Shown: positions 15,601 to 64,000, counted from the stretch's first letter. The stretch is 64,000 nt of DNA from Mytilus edulis (GCF_963676685.1 NC_092349.1:87358001-87422000), one strand, 5' to 3'. Program-made: numbers and translations. Notes: generated from the letters alone by a model not told the origin.

Positions 15601-18600
15601 CATCAATTAGCCAATTTAGAGTTTAAAGCGATACTAAAAGAGAGGCAAAAGATACTAAAGGGACATTCAAACGCATGTCAAAAATAAATTAACAACGCGA
15701 TGGCTTAGAAATAAAAAGACCATCAGACAAACAATAGTACACAAAACACAACATAAAAAAAATCTTTTAGAAGATTCTCCGGAAGAGTAAACGTAAAATG
15801 TTCTGTTTGTTTTTCTGTATTCAAAATCTGTAGTTTGTTTCTCCGAATGACAACAGTCAGTTTGTGACATTGTTATATGACATTAAATGCACAGCTACTT
15901 ACTAGTATATTACAATTGATGATGAGATGATATCGTATCAGTAAGTAAAGTACTTTCAGCTTTCTCATTGTAACTGCGAGCATTATATATAGAACGACAT
16001 TAATGGTTATTTCAGAAAAAAATAATGGAGGCTAGAATTGATACTGATTTCAACACGGGTTCGCCCTTTAGGCTAAACATTTCCCGTCCGGCCTTGCTAA
16101 AGTGTGACGTCAATTTGGCTGTGCGGGATGTATAAATACGCAGACACGTTCGTTCGTAATGGAGACGTTTACTTCGAAGTTTCATGTAGGTTGATACCAC
16201 ACTCTCTGCATGTTAAAAACATGTATAACAACTCGTTGAGTGGTCCGTAGATTGCTTGTTGTAAGGCAAAAATTATGTTCCAATCCAACATACCTAATCT
16301 TCAGTGAAAAATCTTTCCAGGTACCAAATTACCTTTGATAAATACTTCGCAGAACCTGCCTATCCTGTATGGGTTGCTGTCTCCTTTACCCATACCTACC
16401 CTGTATAATGTATTTGCCACCTATGTCATGAACTCAACTAATGACGTATACCCTACATCTCCTTTACCCACACCTACCCTGTATAATGTATTTGCCACCT
16501 ATGTCATGAACTCAATGACGTATACCCTACATCTCCTTTACCCATACCTACCCTGTATAATGTATTTGCCACCTATGTCAGATGAACTCAATGACGTATA
16601 CCCTACATCTTCTTTACCCATACCTACCCTGTATAATATATTTGCCACCTATGCCATGAACTCAATGACGTATACCCTACATCTCCTTTACCCATACCTA
16701 CCCTGTATAATGTATTTGCCACCTATGTCAGATGAACTCAATGACGTATACCCTACATCTCCTTTACCCATACCTACCCTGTATAATATATTTGCCACCT
16801 ATGTCAGATGAACTCAATGACGTATACCCTACATCTCCTTTACCCATACCTACCCTGTATAATATATTTGCCACCTATGCTATGAACTCAATGACGTATA
16901 CCCTACATCTCCTTTAACCATACCTACCCTGTATAATATATTTGCCACCTATGCCATGAACTCAATGACGTATACCCTACATCTCCTTTACCCATACCTA
17001 CCCTGTATAATGTATTTGTCACCTATGTCAGATGAACTCAATGACGTATACCGTATACCCTACATCTCCTTTACCCATACCTACCCTGTATAATGTATTT
17101 GTCACCTATGTCAGATGAACTCAATGACGTATACCCTACATTTCCTTTACCCATATCTACCCTGTATAATATATTTGCCACCTATGCCATGAACTCAATG
17201 ACGTATACCCTACATCTCCTTTACCCATACCTACCCTGTATAATGTATTTGTCACCTATGTCAGATGAACTCAATGATGTATACCCTACATCTCCTTTAC
17301 CCATACCTACCCTGTATAATATATTTGCCACCTATGCCATGAACTCAATGACGTATACCCTACATCTCCTTTACCCATACCTACCCTGTATAATGTATTT
17401 GTCACCTATGTCAGATGAACTAAATGAAGTATACCCTACATCTCCTTTACCCTTACCTACCCTGTATAATATATTTGCCACCTATGCCATGAACTCAATG
17501 ACGTATACCCTACATCTCCTTTACCCATACCTACCCTGTATAATATATTTGCCACCTATGCCATGAACTCAATGACGTATACCCTACATCTCCTTTAACC
17601 ATACCTACCCTGTATAATATATTTGCCACCTATGCCATGAACTCAATGACGTATACCCTACATCTCCTTTACCCATACCTACCCTGTATAATATATTTGC
17701 CACCTATGACATGAACTCAATGACGTATACCCTACATCTCCTTTACCCATACCTACTCTGTATAATATATTTGCCACCTATGCCATGAACTCAATGACGT
17801 ATACCCTACATCTCCTTTACCCATACCTACCCTGTATAATGTATTTGTCACCTATGTCAGATGAACTAAATGAAGTATACCCTACATCTCCTTTACCCTT
17901 ACCTACCCTGTATAATATATTTGCCACCTATGCCATGAACTCAATGACGTATACCCTACATCTCCTTTACCCATACCTACCCTGTATAATATATTTGCCA
18001 CCTATGCCATGAACTCAATGACGTATACCCTACATCTCCTTTACCCATACCTACCCTGTATAATGTATTTGTCACCTATGTCAGATGAACTCAATGACGT
18101 ATACCCTACATCTACTTTACCCATACCTACCCTGTATAATATATTTGCCACCTATGTCAGATGAACTCAATGACGTATACCCTACATCTCCTTTACCCAT
18201 ACCTACCCTGTATAATGTATTTGTCACCTATCACGGTCAGATGAACTCAATGATGTATACCCTACATCTCCTTTACCCATACCTACCCTGTATAATATAT
18301 TTGCCACCTATGCCATGAACTCAATGACGTATACCCTACATCTCCTTTACCCTTACCTACCCTGTAGAATGTATTTGCCACCTATGTCAGATGTACTCAA
18401 TGACGTATACTCTACATATCCGGCTTTTAAGCATAAAATTCTGTTGAAAATCGAAGGAAACACAGGATATTTTAAGGTGTATACACTGAAAAAAATACCT
18501 AGTAAATATTACTAGTTTGGCTAGTACTTCATTAAAAGTCCCTAGTAGATTATCAAACAACTAATTAGACTAGTATGTTTACTATCGTGGATGCATCGTA

Positions 18601-32418: not shown

Positions 32419-35400
32419 ATGAAACACGTTGTTTTGGTAACAGGCGGGAGTGGATTTCTTGGTCAGCATGTTGTGAAACACTTACAACTCTATGGAGAAA
32501 ATGTTAAAGAAATTAGAGTTTTAGATGTGGTCGACTATAAGCAAAAGCTAGGTAAATATATATACTGATACTTTTAACAACGTTATTTTTACTAAAATGA
32601 GACAACAGTAGTGTATCGGTTTGATATGTAGAATTGAATATACAGTTAATTACAGCTATATTTAAGAAATTATAGATCAACCACGCACTGCAATATAAAA
32701 AATAGGAAGAATTGGTATGATTGTCAATGTGCGAACTGGCCAAATGAGATCAATTGACTGAGAAATGTAGGTCACCATATGACCTTCAACAATGAACAAA
32801 ACATATAATGGAGAGAAAGCTTCAAAAGTCACCGAGAGGACAGATTAAAACAGTTTAAATCCCTTTATAACTTGCTGTTCTTTTTTTATCTATTGAGAGA
32901 AACTAACGACCTGATTGATTTACAAACCAATAAATGAAAAAACAATATTATGAACAAAAACAAACGATTACCCCTGAGTTACATACTAGAAAAGGCATCA
33001 CAGAATACTGCGGTATTATATATGGATGCGGGCATCCAATCCCCTGGGACATTTTCGTAAGAACACACTATTATAACAAGTACTTGATAAGTACATATCT
33101 CCTGAGAACGATACAAAACACCAAAAATAAATTATCAACCCTTAAATACACACATCTGAGAGTAATTGTAGTTACCGAAAGCTAGTCCAAAGCCGTTCAG
33201 ATGATGACAATAATCAAAAGGATGCACGTGTATGTATCACCAATGAAAAATATGTACATTAACGCTGTTATGTAAGATATTATTGTGTTTAATTCATTTT
33301 TTAGAATTTGAGATTAAGAAGCCAACGCAAACATTTACCGGGAGTATAACAGACAAAGATTTAGTAGAACGCGCTTGCCATGGGGTTGATATTGTTTTAC
33401 ATGTTGCGTCCATTATTGACTACAACCAGTTCCCTAACCAAGCCATTCTAAATGAAGTTAATGTCAAAGGTAGCCTTCAATTATAAGACAACTAAATTTG
33501 AGAATGATAATTGAGAATATGTCAAAGAGACAAGAACCAGACCAAAAAGAAAACAGCCGAAGGCCACCAATGGGTCATCAATGCAGCGAGAAAAACCTGC
33601 ACCCGGATGCGTGCTCCAGCTGGCCCCTAAACAAAAATGTGTACTAGTTCAGTGATATGAATGGACGTCACACTAAATAAGAAATATATAAATGAACAGA
33701 ACAATTTTATGAAGACGTAATAAATCTTTTTCAAGTTAGCTCAACATTTAGTTAAAGACTTTCAATGTTTTCGTTTATGACAGTATACCATTTTTTGTAA
33801 TGATGACCTTATTTACCTCCATATCGTCAAAAATCTTTATGGGGACAAATTGGACATACCTTGTCATTGGCTTTGTTCACAAATGAAAGATAAATTTGAT
33901 GGCATGGCATGAACTCAAAATGAAAGGAGATCGGGTGCGTGATCATCGTGAAAATTATAAAAAACACAAAATTATGAATCATTACACAGGACGCATGTTT
34001 GATGCTCGTAATAGGCATACCCCCATGACGAATAACTATAAAAATTGTTGCCGAATGACGTTAACGGTAATCTATGATACATGACAATAAAATGTACTCT
34101 ATTCTATGCGATAAAAAAATCGATTGATTTTTTTTCGAATGACGACGCAACGATAATTGTTTTGAGACCTCTGACGAATCACGATAAGGATATTTAGACG
34201 AATCAGTGTAACATTTCAATCAATTTGACGCTAACTGTAGCTGGAAATGATAGTTTGACGACTAATGGTAAAGGTCATTTCTACCCCCAAGTTTGCTTTA
34301 ATTCGACTCAAAAGTGGCGTTTTTAAAAAGACAAATCAAACTCGAGGTGAAGAGCATTTCTAGCGAAAAAGCATCTTCTGCTATGCATGTATCCCAGTAA
34401 AACTTCTTAATGCTTTGAAACCCATCTAATTTGTATTATTAACATTTCCACAACAGGTACAGAGGTCGTATTGAATGCATGTCGGGAGGAGAATGTGCCT
34501 TACCTTATTTACTGTAGTTCTAGTTCATTATATCTTGGTCCGGAGGCTGTGATGGACGGAACAGAAACATCTGTTTCACAACCATCTAGATTCTATTATA
34601 AAGCCTATGCCTCGTCTAAAGCTAAAGCACAAGATATGGTCTTATCTGCCAATGGTTCTAAATTGAATAATGGTAAGTACCTATGCCATGTTTAAAAATT
34701 TGGCCGAATAGTAGTGATATATGTATTATGTTCAACAATTAAGTAGAAAAAAGGAACAACTCAAATTGAGAATGGAAATGGAAAAGATGTCAAAGAGACA
34801 ACAACCCGACCTAGGAGCAGATGACAGCCAATGCAGCAGGAAAATCCTAAACGCGAAGGTGGTCCTCAGCATCCCCAAAATATAAATTTTGTACTACACT
34901 ATAGCTTGATGCAATTGAATTGCATGTGTCGTTTGAGATCATACACTATGTTTTACTAAGTGAGCCATGTATGCATTTTATCAACATGAATCCGGAGGAA
35001 TAAATGTAATTTCCGAGAATACAGAATTCCAAGTTTAGAAATTAGAATTTGATTGACACATGTTTCTTTTAACAGACGTCACGAGGAGGACATGTATTCG
35101 AAAAATCAATCCTCNNNNNNNNNNNNNNNNNNNNNNNNNNNNNNNNNNNNNNNNNNNNNNNNNNNNNNNNNNNNNNNNNNNNNNNNNNNNNNNNNNNNNN
35201 NNNNNNNNNNNNNNNNNNNNNNNNNNNNNNNNNNNNNNNNNNNNNNNNNNNNNNNNNNNNNNNNNNNNNNNNNNNNNNNAGAATGAAATATATCATGATA
35301 TTATTAAGGAATAAGACTGACAGATTTAAAATTTTGGTTATTCTCAAATAAATTAATATAACATTTAACATATATTTTATTAACTGTATTATTTACTCTG

Positions 35401-46147: not shown

Positions 46148-48229
46148 ATGAATCCAATTCAAACCGTTGTCACATTTATTGCTGTCTTCGTCACAGTTAA
46201 TGGTGCTGGTTATGGAAAAGGTGGCGGTATGGGCGGCGGTATGGGAGGAGGAATGGGAGGCGGTATGGGCGGTGGAATGATGGGCGGTATGGGTGGAGGA
46301 ATGATGGGTGGTGGTATGGGAGGTGGTATGATGGGTGGTGGCATGGGAGGCGGTATGGGTAAGATGATGGGCGGTGGAATGATGGGAGGTATGGGAGGTG
46401 GTATGAGTGGTGGTATGATGGGAGGTATGGGCGGTGGTATGATGGGTGGTATGGGTATGGGTAAGATGATGGGCGGTGGTATGGGCGGAGGAATGGGAGG
46501 TGGAATGGGAGGTGGTATGATGGGAGGTATGGGCGGTATGGGTGGAGGTATGGGTGGTATGGGTAAGATGATGATGCCAATGCCAATGCCAATGCCGATG
46601 CCAATGCCAATGCCAATGCCAATGCCAATGCCAATGCCAAAATCCATGCCAATGCCAATGCCAATGCCAATGCCAATGCCAATGCCAAAAATGGGAGGTG
46701 GTATGATGGGAGGCATGATGGGAGGTAAGTTGAACTAATATTGTTTTCTTACTTTTAACTATTTATTCTATTCAATGTTTTGCCTGATGAACGTGAGGGA
46801 TACACAATTACCGCTAACATAAAACAAACACCAAATACACGTGGGTATATTGATAACTCACAAATATGTCTAGCACGCTCTTGGTGTGACATTCAAAATT
46901 TCAACTGAATTCTATTAATGCTGCAAAAGTTAAGCTGAACTATTATGTCTATCTCCACTGGATAAAATGCTATCATATATAAAGAATAAGGTTGGGTTTC
47001 TATCATTTGTGAACATTTTTTACATGTGTATATATAGTACATGAATGTCATTTGAATTCAAATTCAAACATCGAAAGTTATACATTGATATATTTCATGT
47101 TTAAGAAAAAGAAATACACATATTACTATAATAACATCAAAAAACATCTTTATTATTAATATTATTTATTGACTTTTTTCATATAGGTATGGGCGGAGGA
47201 ATGATGGGCGGTATGGGCGGAGGAATAATGGGAGGTATGGGCGGAGGAATGGGAGGAGGAATGGGCGGAGGAATGGGCGGTGGAATGGGCGGAGGAATGG
47301 GCGGAGGAATGGGCGGAGGAATGGGCGGAGGAATGGGCGGTAAAATGGGAGGTGGCAAAAGTAAGTCTTTGTTTATTGCAGTTTTACTTTGTGAGAATGT
47401 TCTATATATTTGCTGACATTCATTTCATTTTAACTTTGACGAAGTTGTCTCATTGACAATCATACCACATCTCCTTTATATGTTGAATGTTTTGATAGTC
47501 TTTGAGTATTTTGACATTGATTTTAGTTTTGTATTTAAAATTTCTAATATTCAACTAAAAACCTACGTCTTACATTTATAAACATATTTCTTTAATTGCA
47601 GGATACAGAAGAGCCACTGGTACGTAAATTAAAGTACTGTGAAGTCATTAATGTTCGTTGGGTACCAATTTTCAGGGATTTTGTGGGTCGAGTGAACTAT
47701 GGATCTAACAGTTCAACGAACTACAAATTTTCTGTACTTTGGCAATCTGCGAAACTGAATATCTACGAAAATGCAAGTTTCCTTAATCCACGAAAATTGG
47801 TACCCACGAAAATAAAAAGAATCCACAGTAAAGCAAACGTTCTTTGTCGTGTAATAGTCAGTGCTACTCGAATACTTTGCATCTGAATAAGATTGATTGA
47901 GTGATTAAATGACTGAAGGGTTGGTTGATTGATTGATTGATTACTAAACTTGGCATCTCCACAAATGCGTTGTAGCAAATAGAGGACATTATATATCTTT
48001 TTAGCCTCTCATTTAAGACTCGAAATGTAGTCATTGTTATATTCTATTTAATCAATTACATTGTACATGAAAATTATTTTCAACTTTTATTTTCCTCGAT
48101 TAACTTTTATATCAAAAGTACATATCAAAGGATAAAAAACCTGATATACACCTTTCGTTATTTTTTTTATTGTCGTTTACTTATGTTGCCATTTTCTTTC
48201 TTTCAGATTCTTATTCATACGATTATTGA
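46148..48229 (+). CDS. Secreted Gly/Met/Pro-rich structural protein A (abductin-like, putative hinge-ligament precursor); join(46148..46724,47187..47360,47602..47619,48207..48229), 263 aa
   Basis: Signal-like MNPIQTVVTFIAVFVTVNG|AGYGKGG, then (MGGG)n, (MP)11-KS-(MP)7, more (MGGG)n and the tail GK-RYRRAT-DSYSYDY*. Splice sites are canonical phase 1, and both tiny exons are conserved in paralog B. AATAAA at 48282. The gene model is well supported; the function is inferred. Confidence 0.88.
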
Positions 48230-48281
48230 ACAACATCATTTAGATTGGATTAGTCAGAAACATTTCATCATTGTAATATAT

Positions 48282-48287
48282 AATAAA
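48282..48287 (+). terminator. Polyadenylation signal of gene A
   Basis: AATAAA about 53 nt after the stop, in the context TATAATAAATGTTT shared with gene B. Confidence 0.7.
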
Positions 48288-50880
48288 TGTTTATACATAC
48301 CTTGATTGTTTACTCATGATATTAATCACCAATATGAATTATTTTATATAAGATTTTTGATTGATGTAAAAATGATAACATGTCATTCTCTACAGTAAAA
48401 CACTTGCCTTTATCAGAAATTTAGACCCGTAGAGTATTGCCGCGAATTAAAACAAGTTTAACCCTGCTACATTCTGTATTTGCCTGTCCTAAGTCTGGAG
48501 CCTGTAATTCAGTAGTTTTCTTAATGCCTGTATAACATATTTGTTTTTTATGTTCTTTTTTTGTTCATAAATCAGGCCGTTAGTTTATTCGTTTGAATTA
48601 TTTTACAAGTGTCATTTTGGGCCTTTCAAACATGTAGCGTACTATGCCGTATGGGTTTTATTCATTGTTGAAGGCCTTACGGTGACCTATAATTGTTAGT
48701 TTCTGTGTCAGTTGGTATCTTGTGGAAAGTTGTCTCATGAAACATCCTTTTTGTTTTTGTAAGGATGCTTCAATGTTTAAAACATAATGATGGTCATTTA
48801 TTAGTAGGGCATAATAGTTATAAACACATAAATCAAAATAGAAAACGAACAGACTGTAAGAAATATCAGCTTCTAAATTGCTCAATCGTGATTAATGAAA
48901 GACGAATAACGAGTATGGCTGGATGTAATGTGTTTGTGAGTTCTCATTTCACCAACACAAGAGTGACACGACAACCATATTTTCTAACAAAGGAATATGT
49001 ATTTATAAAAAAAGATGAGTTGGAAAACGTCGATGAAATAAATTCCAAATAGCCCAAAGACGTCTTTTTGGTCAATTTACCATCTCCTACGATTGACAAA
49101 TGGCATTATCGTAAACCAAGCTTTCATTTTCCTTCAGTTTAGACAAACAAACAAATTAACCCATAGGACATCACATAATTAACATCGAAGAAATACACAC
49201 GCAACGAAAAACTGAAATGGAGTAACATGAACCATTATCACAATTTAGAGGAGCCATGTGTCAAATAAACGTAGACATTTCCTGTTTGATTCTTATGACA
49301 AGTCTTATTCGGTTATACATCACGACCAAAGAAAAGAGGAGGGCATGCATGTTTAACGACACATTGACCATTTCTATGGTCATCTGTAACATCGATATTC
49401 TGTAACTATCAACTACACAAGTCATGGTGTCAAATATAACACGTTCGATATCATGATTCATGTTTTCAATCAAGAACTTTTGGTGTAGTTACGTAAAAAA
49501 TCATCTTATTTAATATTTTGATTGAAACCACTAGCTTTTGTCTCTAAAAATTAGAAAAATTACCAAACTCCTGTGTAAATTCAAAAAGGAGAAGTACATA
49601 CAAACAGATAAAAACAAATGCTATAAATCAACGGAACGAGTGAAAATCAGCTGTTATATTCCAGGCTTATTACATGCACTTCCAGAACAAAGTGGTTGGG
49701 TTAATATAAAAATCAGAAATTATTGCAAATAAGACAAGTCTCCAAATACTAGATGACAAAGAAATTAACACAATAGGTCACTGTATGGCCATGGACAACG
49801 AACAAAGCCAATAGTGCATAGTCAGCTATAAAACATCCCGAAAAAAATGTAACACAATTCAAACGAGAAAATAATGGCATAATTTATTTGCAAAATAATG
49901 GACAAAAACATATATGTTACACACCAACAAACGACAACCCCTGAATAACTGGCTCCTGGTTTGGAGCGGAAACTTTCAAAACAAGGCGGGTTAATACATA
50001 GGACAGTGGTGTAACAGTACAACATAAGAACAAATCATAAAAAACAGTTGAAAAAGCTTTACCTGATCAGACAGATACCAAGAGAAAACACCCAACAAAA
50101 ACACAGCGTGGACGTAGACATGTATTTATACATTCCTTAAACAACAAGACACTAAGTACAGATCTTAAATTTTCTGACAACTAGTTGAAAGCCACTAACA
50201 ACTAATAAACAAAATCATGTATCTTAGACACAAATAACGTCAGTGCACATTTAGCATCCATTAGATTTAGTACCACGACGTCATGAACAATCAGAGAAAA
50301 ACATGACTTTGCGCAATGCCAAGATACAGGTGTCGACATATTGCAGAGCCATTAAAGTGCATATCGTTATAAACACAACTTATAATTTGATTTTAATTTA
50401 CTGATTAAATGTTGAATATTGATAGCAATACAAATCATATTCAAAGATTTTATTACCAAGACCATTACAGTATTGATTTGATAACCTTTTAGATAAGTGT
50501 ACTTAAAGGATCGTTACCGTAAAGTTTTTTAAATTGCTGGGCTAGGTAAACGGTATCAACGTAAAAGAAGGGATGTGATTTTCCGTTTAAATAAATTTAT
50601 CTACAGGTACAACATAATTTAAATCACAATCTTTTACATGTTTATAGCAATCGAAAAATTAAGTAAAGATTTTGAATAATATGTGATAACGAAGTCCCTG
50701 ACTTAATAATCCACTAGTAGTACATAGCTTACGTTAATTAAATCCTTAACGTCACAACAGACACAAACACAGCAAACGAGTATATAAATAGGGATCGAAA
50801 TTTTTTCTCTTTTTTCGAAACATTACAGTTTCCCGTGTATAACTGAAATATCTAAATGTAGGAAAGGACAATTACGTATT

Positions 50881-60057: not shown

Positions 60058-63000
60058 ATGAATCCAATTCAGATCGTTGTCACATTTATGGCTGTCTTCG
60101 TCACAGTAAATGGTTTTCCCTACGGTGGCGGTATGGGCGGCGGTATGATGGGTGGTGGTATGATGGGTGGTGGTATGGGTATGGGTGGTATGGGTATGGG
60201 CAAAATGATGGGTGGTGGTATGGGCGGTGGAATGGGCGGTGGAATGGGAGGTGGAATGGGCGGTAGAAAAGGTATGCAGATGGAAATGGAAGCCGCTCCG
60301 GGTGGTATGGGCGGCGGTATGGGTGGAATGGGTATGGAGGTTGAAATGAAACCCACTCCAGCTGCTGGTAACAGAATGGGCGGTGGAATGGGAGGCGGTA
60401 TGGGAGGTGGTATGGGAGGCGGTATGGGAGGAATGGGCGGTGGAATGGGTATGGAGGTTGAAATGAAACCCGCTCCAGCTGCTGGTAACAAGATGGGCGG
60501 TGGAATGGGCGGCGGTATGGGAGGTGGTATGGGAGGCGGTATGGGAGGAATGGGCGGCGGAATGGGTATGGAGGTTGAAATGAAACCCACTCCAGCTGCT
60601 GGTAACAAGATGGGCGGTGGAATGGGAGGAGGTATGGGAGGAATGAGCGGCGGAATGGGTATGGAGGTTGAAATGAAACCCGCTCCAGCTGCTGGTAACA
60701 AGATGGGCGGTGGAATGGGAGGCGGTATGGGAGGAATGGGCGGTGGAATGGGCGGTATGGGTGGGATGATGGGCGGTGGAATGGGTGGTGGAAAAGGAAT
60801 GCAGGTTGAAATGGAAGCCGGCCCAGGTGGAATGGGAGGTGGTATGGGTGGAATGGGCGGTGGAATGGGTCAGATGATGATGATGCCGATGCCAATGCAA
60901 ATGGCAATGCCACAACAAATGCCAATGTCAATGATGGGAGGTAATTAGAATTGTTATTTAAAATTTAAATTACATTTTTCCATTCAATGTTTTGTTTGCT
61001 GTACGGTCGAGAAACTTCACCCTTTTGTATAATCCATTCATCGCACGCAGATAATACAATATATATGTTTAAGCATGATACCTCTTACAAAAATAATTCA
61101 CCTGTCATTTAAATATAGTCAATCAAAAACGATCATATACGAATTGAATAAAAAAAATCAATGTAAATCGTGTCGAAAGTTTGCGATTACATGTAATATA
61201 TTTCATGTCGTAAGTCTGACATTAAATGTAATATATTTAAAAACAAAATTAAATATATATTTCATGTTGAAGATAGGGAAAGTAAAAACTTAAGGTACCT
61301 ACATAAACAAAACCGATTTGTATTGTGTTCAACATTAATGTAAATCCTTTTTTTAATTTAATTTGGTGGATATTGACAATCATACCACATCTCCTTATTT
61401 TTATAATTTATGATTATGTAAAGTGTTAATGATACTTTTTATTTATTTTCATGTCATAAAGGTATGGGCGGTGGAATGGGCGGAGGTATGGGTAAGATGA
61501 TGATGCCTATGCCAATGCAAATGCCAATGTCAATGCCAGAACCCATGCCAATGCCAATGCCAAAAATGGAAATGGAAATGCCAATGCCAAAGATGGGAGG
61601 TGGAATGATGGGCGGTGGAATGGGCGGTGGTATGATGGGCGCCGGCATGAGCGGTGGTATGATGGGCGCTGGAATGGGCGCAGGAATGGGCGCTGGAATG
61701 GAAATGGAAGGCAGTATGGGTGGAATGGGAGGCGGTATGGGCGGTGGAATGGGAGGTGCTATGGGTGGAATGGGCGCAGCTATGGCTAAAATGATGATGA
61801 TGCCAGAACCTATGCCAATGCAAAAGCCAATGCCAAAAATGGAAATCGAAATGCCACCAGGAATGTCAAAAATGATGGGAGCTAAAATGATGGCTGCCAT
61901 GATGGGAGGTAAATAAAATTGATTTCATTTTCTTCTCCTACTTTTAAATTAATTGTTGTGCAAGCTGTATAGGAGAAAACACAAAATTCACCATTTCGTA
62001 TCATCCATTCATTGATGTGACATAATATGTTAAAAGTATAGACCTTTCACAAAAGATACAAAAACCGATTCATGCGGGTATATTGAAAACCTACAAATTA
62101 ATACGAATATAAATACGAAAAAGAGTTATAAAAAATAAAAGTCATGTTACTCTAATGTACATTTTATAATAATATCAATGACAATGTTTTTAACAAATAA
62201 ATGTATATATTTATAGTATAAGCTAAGATGAATTTCATATATTTTAAAGTTGTACATGCATAAAGGTAAGACACACATTATCATATTTATGAATGAAACG
62301 TTTAAATTGTACACAATATCTATTTACTTGTATTTATTATGTATAGTGTATATGATGTTCAATATATGTCTTGTTTCCATATAGGTATGAGCGGCGGAAT
62401 GGGCGGAGGAATGGGAGGAGGAATGGCCGGTGGAATGGGCGGAACAATGGGAGGAATGGGAGGAGGAATGGGAGGAATGGGAATGGGAGGAGCAATGGGA
62501 GGAATGGGAATGGGAGGAGCAATGGGAGGAATGGGAATGGGAGGCAAAAGTAAGTCATAGTTCATTCAAGATTTAATAAAGGAATAAATGCCTTTTTTTC
62601 AGAGTATAAAGGACTTTTATGATATGTTTATGAGTGACGTGGTTCGGTTAAAAAAACAATAATATCCTTTGTAAAGTCTTATGATCCTTTATTTTGTCTG
62701 TATATCTGTGTCACTGAATTGGCATGGCACCTTCATATATTTTTTTGGTTCAAATAAATGTTTTGTGTTTCTTGTTTAATTAAAAAATGAACGCGAAGTG
62801 AAAATAAATATGTGAAACGTCGAAACAGTGTGTTTTATTATAGTATTTATCTTGTTTACGTTGTTAAGGAAAATTAGTTCCATCAACGGCGTCTACAAAT
62901 TAATGACTTCCAGATCCTCTACAAAATACCCTTTCAATCAATCATATTGACGTATACTTTGATATGCATATCATATCAGAATAATGTTTTTAATAATGAA

Positions 63001-63626
63001 CTATTGAATTGCTTATATCAACATTATTTGAACTTTTTTGATGGTTACCTATTTGGCAATCATACAAAGTGTTTTTATAATTTTATATAGAATGTGTAAA
63101 TATTTATAATTCTTGTATCAACATAAAAGTCAATAAATTGATAAACATGTATTTTTTTAAATTGCAGGATATAGAAGATCTACTGGTATGTAGAACAGCA
63201 TTTATATTTATTTAGCAGACTATAATTATTTCTTAAAATGGCATTATTTTGTATCAGATGTATCAGATTCAAGTTTTATTATCCTCAGACACAAGCAGTA
63301 TATAAATGGTCAATATACATACATCAATACATAAATGAACAAATGATCTATACCTGTATACAGTACCTACAATATAATTATGAAAACACATTAGAGGTAT
63401 GACAATAGAAGCTAACACACTTTTAACAACCACGTGGTTATAGTAGTCAAAGATTGTTGAAAAATAAACAAGACAAGTATATTTTAGTCGTAGAGTTGAG
63501 TACTCCCGTAGTAAGCAAAAGTAAACATATACTAAAGTAGAAACAAAGTTGAAATTAATTTCCTTTTTGATGTTTACTCATGTGGACTTTTGTTTTCTTT
63601 CAGATTCTTATTCATATGATTACTGA
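60058..63626 (+). CDS. Secreted Gly/Met/Pro-rich structural protein B, paralog of A; join(60058..60940,61462..61908,62385..62549,63168..63185,63604..63626), 511 aa
   Basis: MNPIQIVVTFMAVFVTVNG|FPYGGG, (MGGG)n, four MEVEMKP(T/A)PAAGN modules, MP-rich blocks and the tail GK-RYRRST-DSYSYDY*. GT-AG phase-1 introns. AATAAA at 63679. Confidence 0.88.
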
Positions 63627-63678
63627 TCAACATCATAGACGTCGTATTAGTCCGAAACTAACCATTGTTGTACATTAT

Positions 63679-63684
63679 AATAAA
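63679..63684 (+). terminator. Polyadenylation signal of gene B
   Basis: AATAAA about 53 nt after the stop, same context as in gene A. Confidence 0.7.
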
Positions 63685-64000
63685 TGTTTTTACATGTTTC
63701 TAAATTGTTTTCTTATGACGTTCACCCCTTATATGAATTACTTATTAGTCGATACAACATCTTTATTCATTGGTGGAAACATTGTCATTGGTTATTACTA
63801 ACTGTTCAGCAAATGCATCAAATTTTATCATGACACGGTTGGTGAATAAGGAACTAGTAAAAAATTTGTCGACAATATTCTTGGTTTCTTCATTGTAATA
63901 AGTATTTGATAATTGTTCATGAGGACATTGTCTATATAAATAAAGAATTTAAAAGAGAAAAAAAACCAACAGCATGATTTGATCTATAGCAATAAAGTTA

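Follow-up and report, generated by a model that had tools for sequence, protein, structure and literature searches.

The stretch of DNA considered here, a window of 64,000 nucleotides (nt) from the Mytilus edulis assembly (C6:87358001-87422000, in a genome of 1.37 Gb), carries on its + strand two genes, g1 and g2, which are best explained as tandemly arranged paralogs encoding a secreted protein of the abductin kind, rich in Gly and Met and intrinsically disordered, and each of which is closed by an 18-nt micro-exon and a 23-nt terminal coding exon. We hold with high confidence that these two small exons are real and under selection, because comparison of the paralogs revealed diverged introns, preserved exons, an excess of synonymous changes and a preserved spacing of the AATAAA signal, and we infer that both are spliced into the mature messenger RNA. 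The two exons would together constitute a conserved 3' processing module of each gene, the micro-exon contributing Y-[R/K]-R, together with the greater part of the P4 Arg, to a putative furin/proprotein-convertase site ([K/R]-R-Y-[R/K]-R) and the last exon encoding an acidic, Tyr-rich peptide of 9-10 residues with the pattern x-x-D...Y-D-Y-COOH. It is our tentative proposal, held at somewhat less than even confidence, that a single precursor thereby gives rise to both an elastomer and a crystal-acting peptide; this is a plausible reading, which supposes that the site is cut, that the genes are expressed in the ligament-secreting mantle and that the peptide acts on mineral.

Structure and conservation of the two small exons

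The features of g1 and g2, in window coordinates, are as follows.

46148..46724, + strand: g1 exon 1, with the start codon, signal peptide (MNPIQTVVTFIAVFVTVNG), one N-terminal Tyr (AGYGK), repeats of the GGGM and MP types, and a phase-1 donor
47187..47360, + strand: g1 exon 2, GGGM repeats up to GGK, then base 1 of the P4 Arg codon; phase-1 introns on both sides
47602..47619, + strand: g1 micro-exon, 18 nt, AG/GT flanks, phase-1 symmetric; (R)-Y-R-R-A-T, then base 1 of the Asp codon, completing K-R-Y-R-R
48207..48229, + strand: g1 terminal coding exon, 23 nt, (D)-S-Y-S-Y-D-Y-stop (TGA)
48230..48287, + strand: g1 3' untranslated region (UTR) up to AATAAA, which lies at 48282-48287, 52 nt past the stop
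60058..60940, + strand: g2 exon 1, with signal peptide, one N-terminal Tyr (FPYGG), and GGGM blocks alternating with MEVEMKP(T/A)PAAGNK units
61462..61908, + strand: g2 exon 2, Gly/Met and Met/Pro repeats; phase-1 introns on both sides
62385..62549, + strand: g2 exon 3, Gly/Met repeats up to GGK, then base 1 of the Arg codon
63168..63185, + strand: g2 micro-exon, 18 nt, (R)-Y-R-R-S-T
63604..63626, + strand: g2 terminal coding exon, 23 nt, (D)-S-Y-S-Y-D-Y-stop
63627..63684, + strand: g2 3' UTR up to AATAAA, which lies at 63679-63684, 52 nt past the stop

The initial annotation had placed an 18-nt micro-exon and a 23-nt terminal exon at the end of both genes, and the coordinates found here agree with it to the base, with AG/GT splice sites; translation over the junctions also reproduced the tail that it had given, GGK-R-Y-R-R-(A/S)T-DSYSYDY, in g1 and g2. 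The joined tail of g1 reads GGK-R-Y-R-R-A-T-D-S-Y-S-Y-D-Y-stop and that of g2 is the same with Ser in place of Ala, and codon comparison confirmed both this single residue difference and the TAC/TAT changes at the three Tyr codons. The g1 donor at 47360 is A/GTAAGT in phase 1, and the acceptor of the g1 terminal exon consists of a long pyrimidine-rich tract followed by AG. When joined, the exons of each gene form one closed open reading frame (ORF) of 263 amino acids (aa) in g1 and 511 aa in g2; the joined coding sequences were translated locally only, for frame, length and composition, single exons being used for the database searches. The proteins of g1-g4 have a hydrophobic N-terminal leader, contain 38-47% Gly and 26-30% Met, and are built from GGGM/GGMM and MP repeats, with the addition of MEVEMKPxPAAGNK in g2, and with no Phe in the repeats; a Pfam domain search of the repeat bodies gave no family match.

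The family consists of five copies, all on the + strand and within about 70 kb, with g1 and g2 in the window and g3-g5 downstream of it. A whole-genome search with the terminal-exon pattern identified g3 at 10 kb beyond the end of the window, and a looser version of the pattern, again applied to the whole genome, identified g4 and g5 farther downstream. The terminal-exon pattern had 72 matches in the genome, spread over 14 large contigs (C1-C14) and a single small one (C1612), and its reversed control had 84, such that its overall frequency is at control level; the exception is the set of five same-strand matches within 66 kb at the g1-g5 locus. Neither the leader exon DNA nor the g4 first exon, when used as queries, retrieved further family members elsewhere in the 1.37-Gb genome, and two additional matches at the protein level were rejected as (TGGA)n microsatellites. 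The three downstream copies are listed below.

C6:87429952-87432055 (L003:955-972 and 1503-1525; L004:7952-8411), + strand: g3, 195 aa, intact, tail GGK-RYKR-ATDSYSYDY
C6:87439881-87442292 (L005:5881-8292), + strand: g4, 124 aa, diverged and short, tail GGK-RRYRR-NADYSQGYDY
C6:87470300-87471937 (L009), + strand: g5, partial copy of g4, tail RRHRR-NADYSQGYDY

Complete ORFs are present in g1-g4 (124-511 aa), all of whose introns are of the GT-AG type and in phase 1, and the layout of four exons separated by phase-1 introns recurs in g4. The last copy, g5, is 77-85% identical to g4, introns included, and comprises a short repeat exon, a micro-exon with a Tyr-to-His change and a terminal exon; it is probably a truncated duplicate, as the 17 kb upstream yielded no leader exon. 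The description of the terminal nonapeptide as invariant holds approximately for the closest paralogs, g1-g3, in which it is near-invariant, but does not extend to the whole family.

When the tail regions of g1-g3 (~1 kb each) were compared by BLAST, only two significant collinear matches were found in otherwise unalignable introns, one centred on the micro-exon (e.g., 47571-47626 versus 63134-63192, 83%, E = 2e-11) and the other comprising the pyrimidine tract, the terminal exon and the 3' UTR (48158-48340 versus 63555-63739, E = 7e-31). The two tail introns have an identity of 16-39% between paralogs by global alignment, compared with 15-29% for shuffled sequence. Identity among g1-g3 is 78-83% for the micro-exon, 87-96% for the terminal coding exon, 89-93% for the leader and 63-69% for the 3' UTR, and in comparisons with g4 no compartment is better preserved than the micro-exon (61-72%), the signal peptide/leader being 53-58% identical at the DNA level. 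Eight substitutions have accumulated in the 14 tail codons of g1-g3, six of which are synonymous; the probability of six or more synonymous changes out of eight is 0.001-0.006, depending on the transition bias that is assumed. Both replacements (R-to-K at P2 and A-to-S at P1') are conservative, and in the terminal peptide exon all changes are synonymous. The AATAAA signal is exactly 52 nt past the stop in g1-g3 and 23 nt past it in g4 and g5. The purifying selection that the initial annotation had proposed for the tail is thus borne out by the synonymous excess and by the identity of the exons set against introns at shuffled level.

It could be argued that the small exons are not used at all, that the genes end by reading through into the intron (…GGKSKS-stop) and that the observed conservation is a remnant of duplication. 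In g2, g3 and g4 such read-through does soon run into an in-frame stop, and some AATAAA/ATTAAA words are found within 250 nt of the donor in g2-g4. However, no poly(A) word is present within 250 nt of the g1 donor, and the introns have fallen to shuffled level, yet the exons, splice sites, pyrimidine tract and AATAAA spacing have all been kept. Together with the synonymous excess in the tail codons and the occurrence of the same architecture in the diverged g4, this makes unused exons a very improbable explanation.

The basic motif and the terminal tyrosines

The register R-X-[K/R]-R is found in five of five copies, as RYRR in g1, g2 and g4, RYKR in g3 and RHRR in g5, with additional Lys or Arg at P5 and P6 of the motif, and the R-to-K change at P2 in g3 preserves the convertase consensus. 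The recognition of R-X-R-R as a furin/proprotein-convertase consensus, on which the initial annotation had relied, therefore stands in the slightly wider form R-X-[K/R]-R, which is kept in every copy including the diverged g4 (KRRYRR). Entry into the secretory pathway is predicted for g1-g4 from their signal-peptide-like leaders, g5 being without a first exon, and the same genome contains 38 matches above the cut-off to the P_proprotein domain (PF01483), and hence many convertase P-domain genes.

The segment that follows the basic motif is 9 residues long in g1-g3 and 10 in g4, and always has Asp at position 3 and the ending Y-D-Y-stop. The computed monoisotopic M is 1083.403 for ATDSYSYDY, 1099.398 for STDSYSYDY and 1194.447 for NADYSQGYDY. 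Were the site to be cut, the peptide might still have no role in mineral, and serve instead as a disposable pro-piece which maintains the solubility of the sticky Gly/Met chain, or prevents its assembly, up to secretion. A conserved convertase site fits this equally well, and the triggering of assembly by removal of a pro-piece is common amongst extracellular matrix proteins. A mere spacer, however, has no need of Y-D-Y-COOH or of Asp at position 3, yet both persist across paralogs with a DNA identity of only 53-58% in the signal peptide, and the changes in the peptide exon of g1-g3 have all been silent; we consider a pro-piece without mineral function to be improbable.

Each of g1-g4 has exactly five Tyr regardless of its length (124-511 aa): one after the leader (YG[K/R]G or YGGG), one in the basic motif and three in the last peptide. 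Four of the five lie within the last 13-14 residues, and there is no Tyr in bodies of 100-480 residues. Confinement of Tyr to both ends looks like a design for end-linked chains.

As the 18-nt micro-exon is symmetric, with phase 1 at either boundary, its skipping would keep the frame whilst removing the cleavage motif. The products of skipping, computed from the joined coding sequence, would end in GGK-N-SYSYDY, or in GGKR-H-YSQGYDY in the case of g4, and the micro-exon could, to judge from this layout, act as a splice-controlled switch.

The tail compared with LICP and other matrix proteins

LICP is a 10-residue acidic intracrystalline peptide from the hinge ligament of Pinctada fucata, pQPDHEGTYDY, of which residues D3, E5, D9, Y8 and Y10 align on the {110} face of aragonite; neither of the two C-terminal Tyr can be dispensed with, and it is Y10 that approaches the surface first (PMC13080008). 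The traits of LICP which the initial annotation had listed (~10 residues, acidic, a -YDY end and an action on aragonite fibre growth) match this published description. The M. edulis tails are likewise 9-10 residues long and acidic, with an x-x-D start after the putative cut and a free Y-D-Y C-terminus, and NADYSQGYDY of g4 has the same length as LICP (10), shares D3, Y8, D9 and Y10 of the five contact residues, and is of all the tails the closest to LICP. Identity nonetheless amounts to 4/10 positions only, and the tails are without Glu5 and have three Tyr compared with two in LICP. A search of the M. edulis genome for the exact LICP-coding pattern gave chance-level matches only. Suzuki and colleagues reportedly traced LICP in 2015 to the C-terminus of a precursor with ~126 residues, a point which is taken here as a lead and not as a test; if it is right, g4, with its 124 residues, would be the obvious candidate for the orthologue type of the LICP precursor.

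The sequence of events that we tentatively propose would begin in the secretory pathway, where a convertase would cut past the last Arg and a carboxypeptidase would trim the basic residues. The released Gly/Met chain would keep at each end one Tyr beside Lys/Arg (YG[K/R] and GGKRY) for end-linking, whilst free (A/S)TDSYSYDY or NADYSQGYDY would bind aragonite, in the manner of LICP, by way of its carboxylates and Tyr rings, and would thereby influence how the fibres grow. In favour of this we count the closed ORFs, the selection on the tail, the poly(A) signal and the presence of R-X-[K/R]-R in all copies, and further the confinement of the module to the cluster, the convertases encoded in the genome, the LICP-like end of the peptide and the precedent of Pif 177. 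The latter, from pearl-oyster nacre, is processed into Pif 97 and Pif 80 at a dibasic site (PMC13190495), and resembles the arrangement proposed here in that a single bivalve matrix precursor yields two products with different roles through cleavage at a basic site within the secretory pathway. It differs in being large, with folded domains, and in that both of its products are proteins; in M. edulis one of the two would be a 9-10-mer, and the site has a micro-exon to itself.

Several observations weigh against the release of an LICP-like peptide, which should be considered with corresponding caution. The similarity to LICP consists of four positions in a 9-10-mer and was noticed post hoc, and the first residue after the putative cut is Ala, Ser or Asn instead of Gln/pyroGlu. 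Furthermore, a consensus site is no guarantee of cutting, as mussel foot protein 3 has R-G-R-R inside its mature chain. Lastly, the location of all Tyr at the chain ends fits equally well with the terminal-Tyr cross-linking that is speculated for abductin (PMC9999432).

A serious rival explanation is that the tail is spliced in and remains uncut. The positively charged KRYRR and the negatively charged DSYSYDY-COOH, with its three Tyr, would then form a terminal handle for cross-linking or assembly, the opposite charges pairing chain ends and the chemistry of Tyr and 3,4-dihydroxyphenylalanine (DOPA) end-linking the rubber or bonding it to mineral, and the mature matrix protein would retain the C-terminus ...GGKRYRRATDSYSYDY. 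The distribution of the five Tyr in each of the four proteins, with one at the N-terminus, four in the last 13-14 residues and none in the body, accords with such a handle; Arg or Lys adjoining Tyr is typical of mussel DOPA proteins, and the keeping of basic residues and Tyr would be expected equally if the tail stayed in place.

Tropoelastin offers a parallel, for its repeats evolve fast and its tiny, highly conserved, charged last exon (the GRKRK tail) is needed for assembly. The M. edulis genes resemble it as an elastomer with a small conserved charged last exon, a likeness of functional analogy only; the tail of this vertebrate protein is not removed, contains a Cys pair and has no Tyr. 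Cross-linking of abductin through Tyr at the chain extremities is recorded as speculation in two reviews (PMC9999432, PMC13052691). Set against an uncut tail are the exact R-X-[K/R]-R register of every copy, in which the sole basic change (R to K at P2) is one that the consensus tolerates, the accessibility of the site in a disordered secreted chain, and a C-terminal piece with the size, the D3 and the Y-D-Y-COOH of LICP, a peptide found free in ligament aragonite. On balance we regard the uncut handle as the main rival, only a little less probable than the two-product reading.

Abductin itself, as known from the hinge ligament of Argopecten irradians (Cao et al. 1997 via PMC9999432, PMC13052691), has the repeat GGFGGMGGGX and ~58% Gly. 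Abductin and the family presented here are alike in being secreted, with a signal peptide, Gly/Met low-complexity repeats and very few Tyr confined to the ends, and differ in their repeats, which in M. edulis are GGGM/GGMM/MP without Phe, and in composition (Met 26-30% and Gly 38-47%, compared with ~58% Gly). No convertase site or detachable C-terminal peptide is described for abductin in the two reviews consulted (PMC9999432, PMC13052691). Another Met-rich framework protein of the ligament, the ligament methionine-rich protein (LMP) of P. fucata (PMC7591529 supplement), was rejected as a relative; its repeat is MMMKPD, it is not Gly-rich and it is not homologous, and a search of the PMC7591529 supplement did not find a YDY tail in LMP.

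Gly/Met ligament elastomers, LICP and the basic-site processing of matrix precursors are known ingredients. The searchable literature contains no description of abductin-like genes with a convertase-site micro-exon or with a Tyr-rich peptide detachable from the C-terminus, and a literature search for the tail peptide returned no relevant paper. The bivalve hinge is at once a rubber and an array of 50-100-nm aragonite fibres, the construction of which still awaits an explanation, and in Pinctada the framework proteins and the crystal-shaping LICP are regarded as separate products. If elastomer genes do carry, behind a convertase site, a detachable LICP-like peptide, a single transcript would give the matrix and its crystal modifier at a fixed 1:1 stoichiometry, peptides of the LICP type would exist beyond the pearl oysters, and the aragonite-binding assays established for LICP could be applied to three new natural variants. 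The restriction of Tyr to the two chain ends, moreover, provides a testable design rule for end-linked protein rubbers.

A bolder extension, to which we attach little credence, is that LICP-type peptides are generally the cut-off C-termini of pteriomorph Gly/Met ligament elastomer precursors, the Pinctada LICP precursor being a short member of the g4 type. The micro-exon would in that case be a splice-controlled cleavage cassette, which when included would lead to release of the peptide into the aragonite fibre, and when skipped (…GGK-N-SYSYDY) would leave the peptide tethered to the rubber and the matrix bonded to the crystal.

Database relatives and the wider locus

Protein database searches with g1 exon 1, either whole or as residues 1-40, found nothing, the query being of low complexity. 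With the first exon of g4 an exhaustive HMMER search found P0002, and a word-index search together with cluster look-ups found P0016-P0018 and P0024-P0031. All of these are genomic ORFs with g4-like first exons from a related organism, originating from ENA/JGI assemblies, and their residues 1-39 are 85% identical to the g4 query by HMMER or 68-69% by the best local alignment of BLASTP. They carry from 4 to 9 MPGGMMGG units and are located on different contigs, which suggests repeat-number polymorphism. Every one of these relatives has been called as an ORF that runs into the intron, and they are thus uninformative with regard to the tail. The remaining protein matches were unrelated Gly/Met low-complexity proteins, and the match from a metagenome scan was an unrelated contig with 17% GC. 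The gene models given here correct this type of error, as ORF-based or prokaryote-style calling runs into the intron and misses the true C-terminus, as has happened in the database relatives.

The last introns of g3 (L003:1075-1195) and g4 (L005:7738-7856) share a segment of ~120 bp, 90% identical, which is absent from g1 and g2 and looks like an inserted interspersed repeat and not a conserved element. An Rfam scan of the whole window at the gathering threshold found no family. The window has a GC content of 30-33%, and its strong negative GC skew at 16-18 kb is due to a satellite at 16380-18421, consisting of ~27 copies of a 74-bp unit (93% matches); the skewed block had been a candidate for a third Gly/Met gene, on the minus strand, and was rejected on this account. 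A run of 165 N occupies positions 35115-35279.

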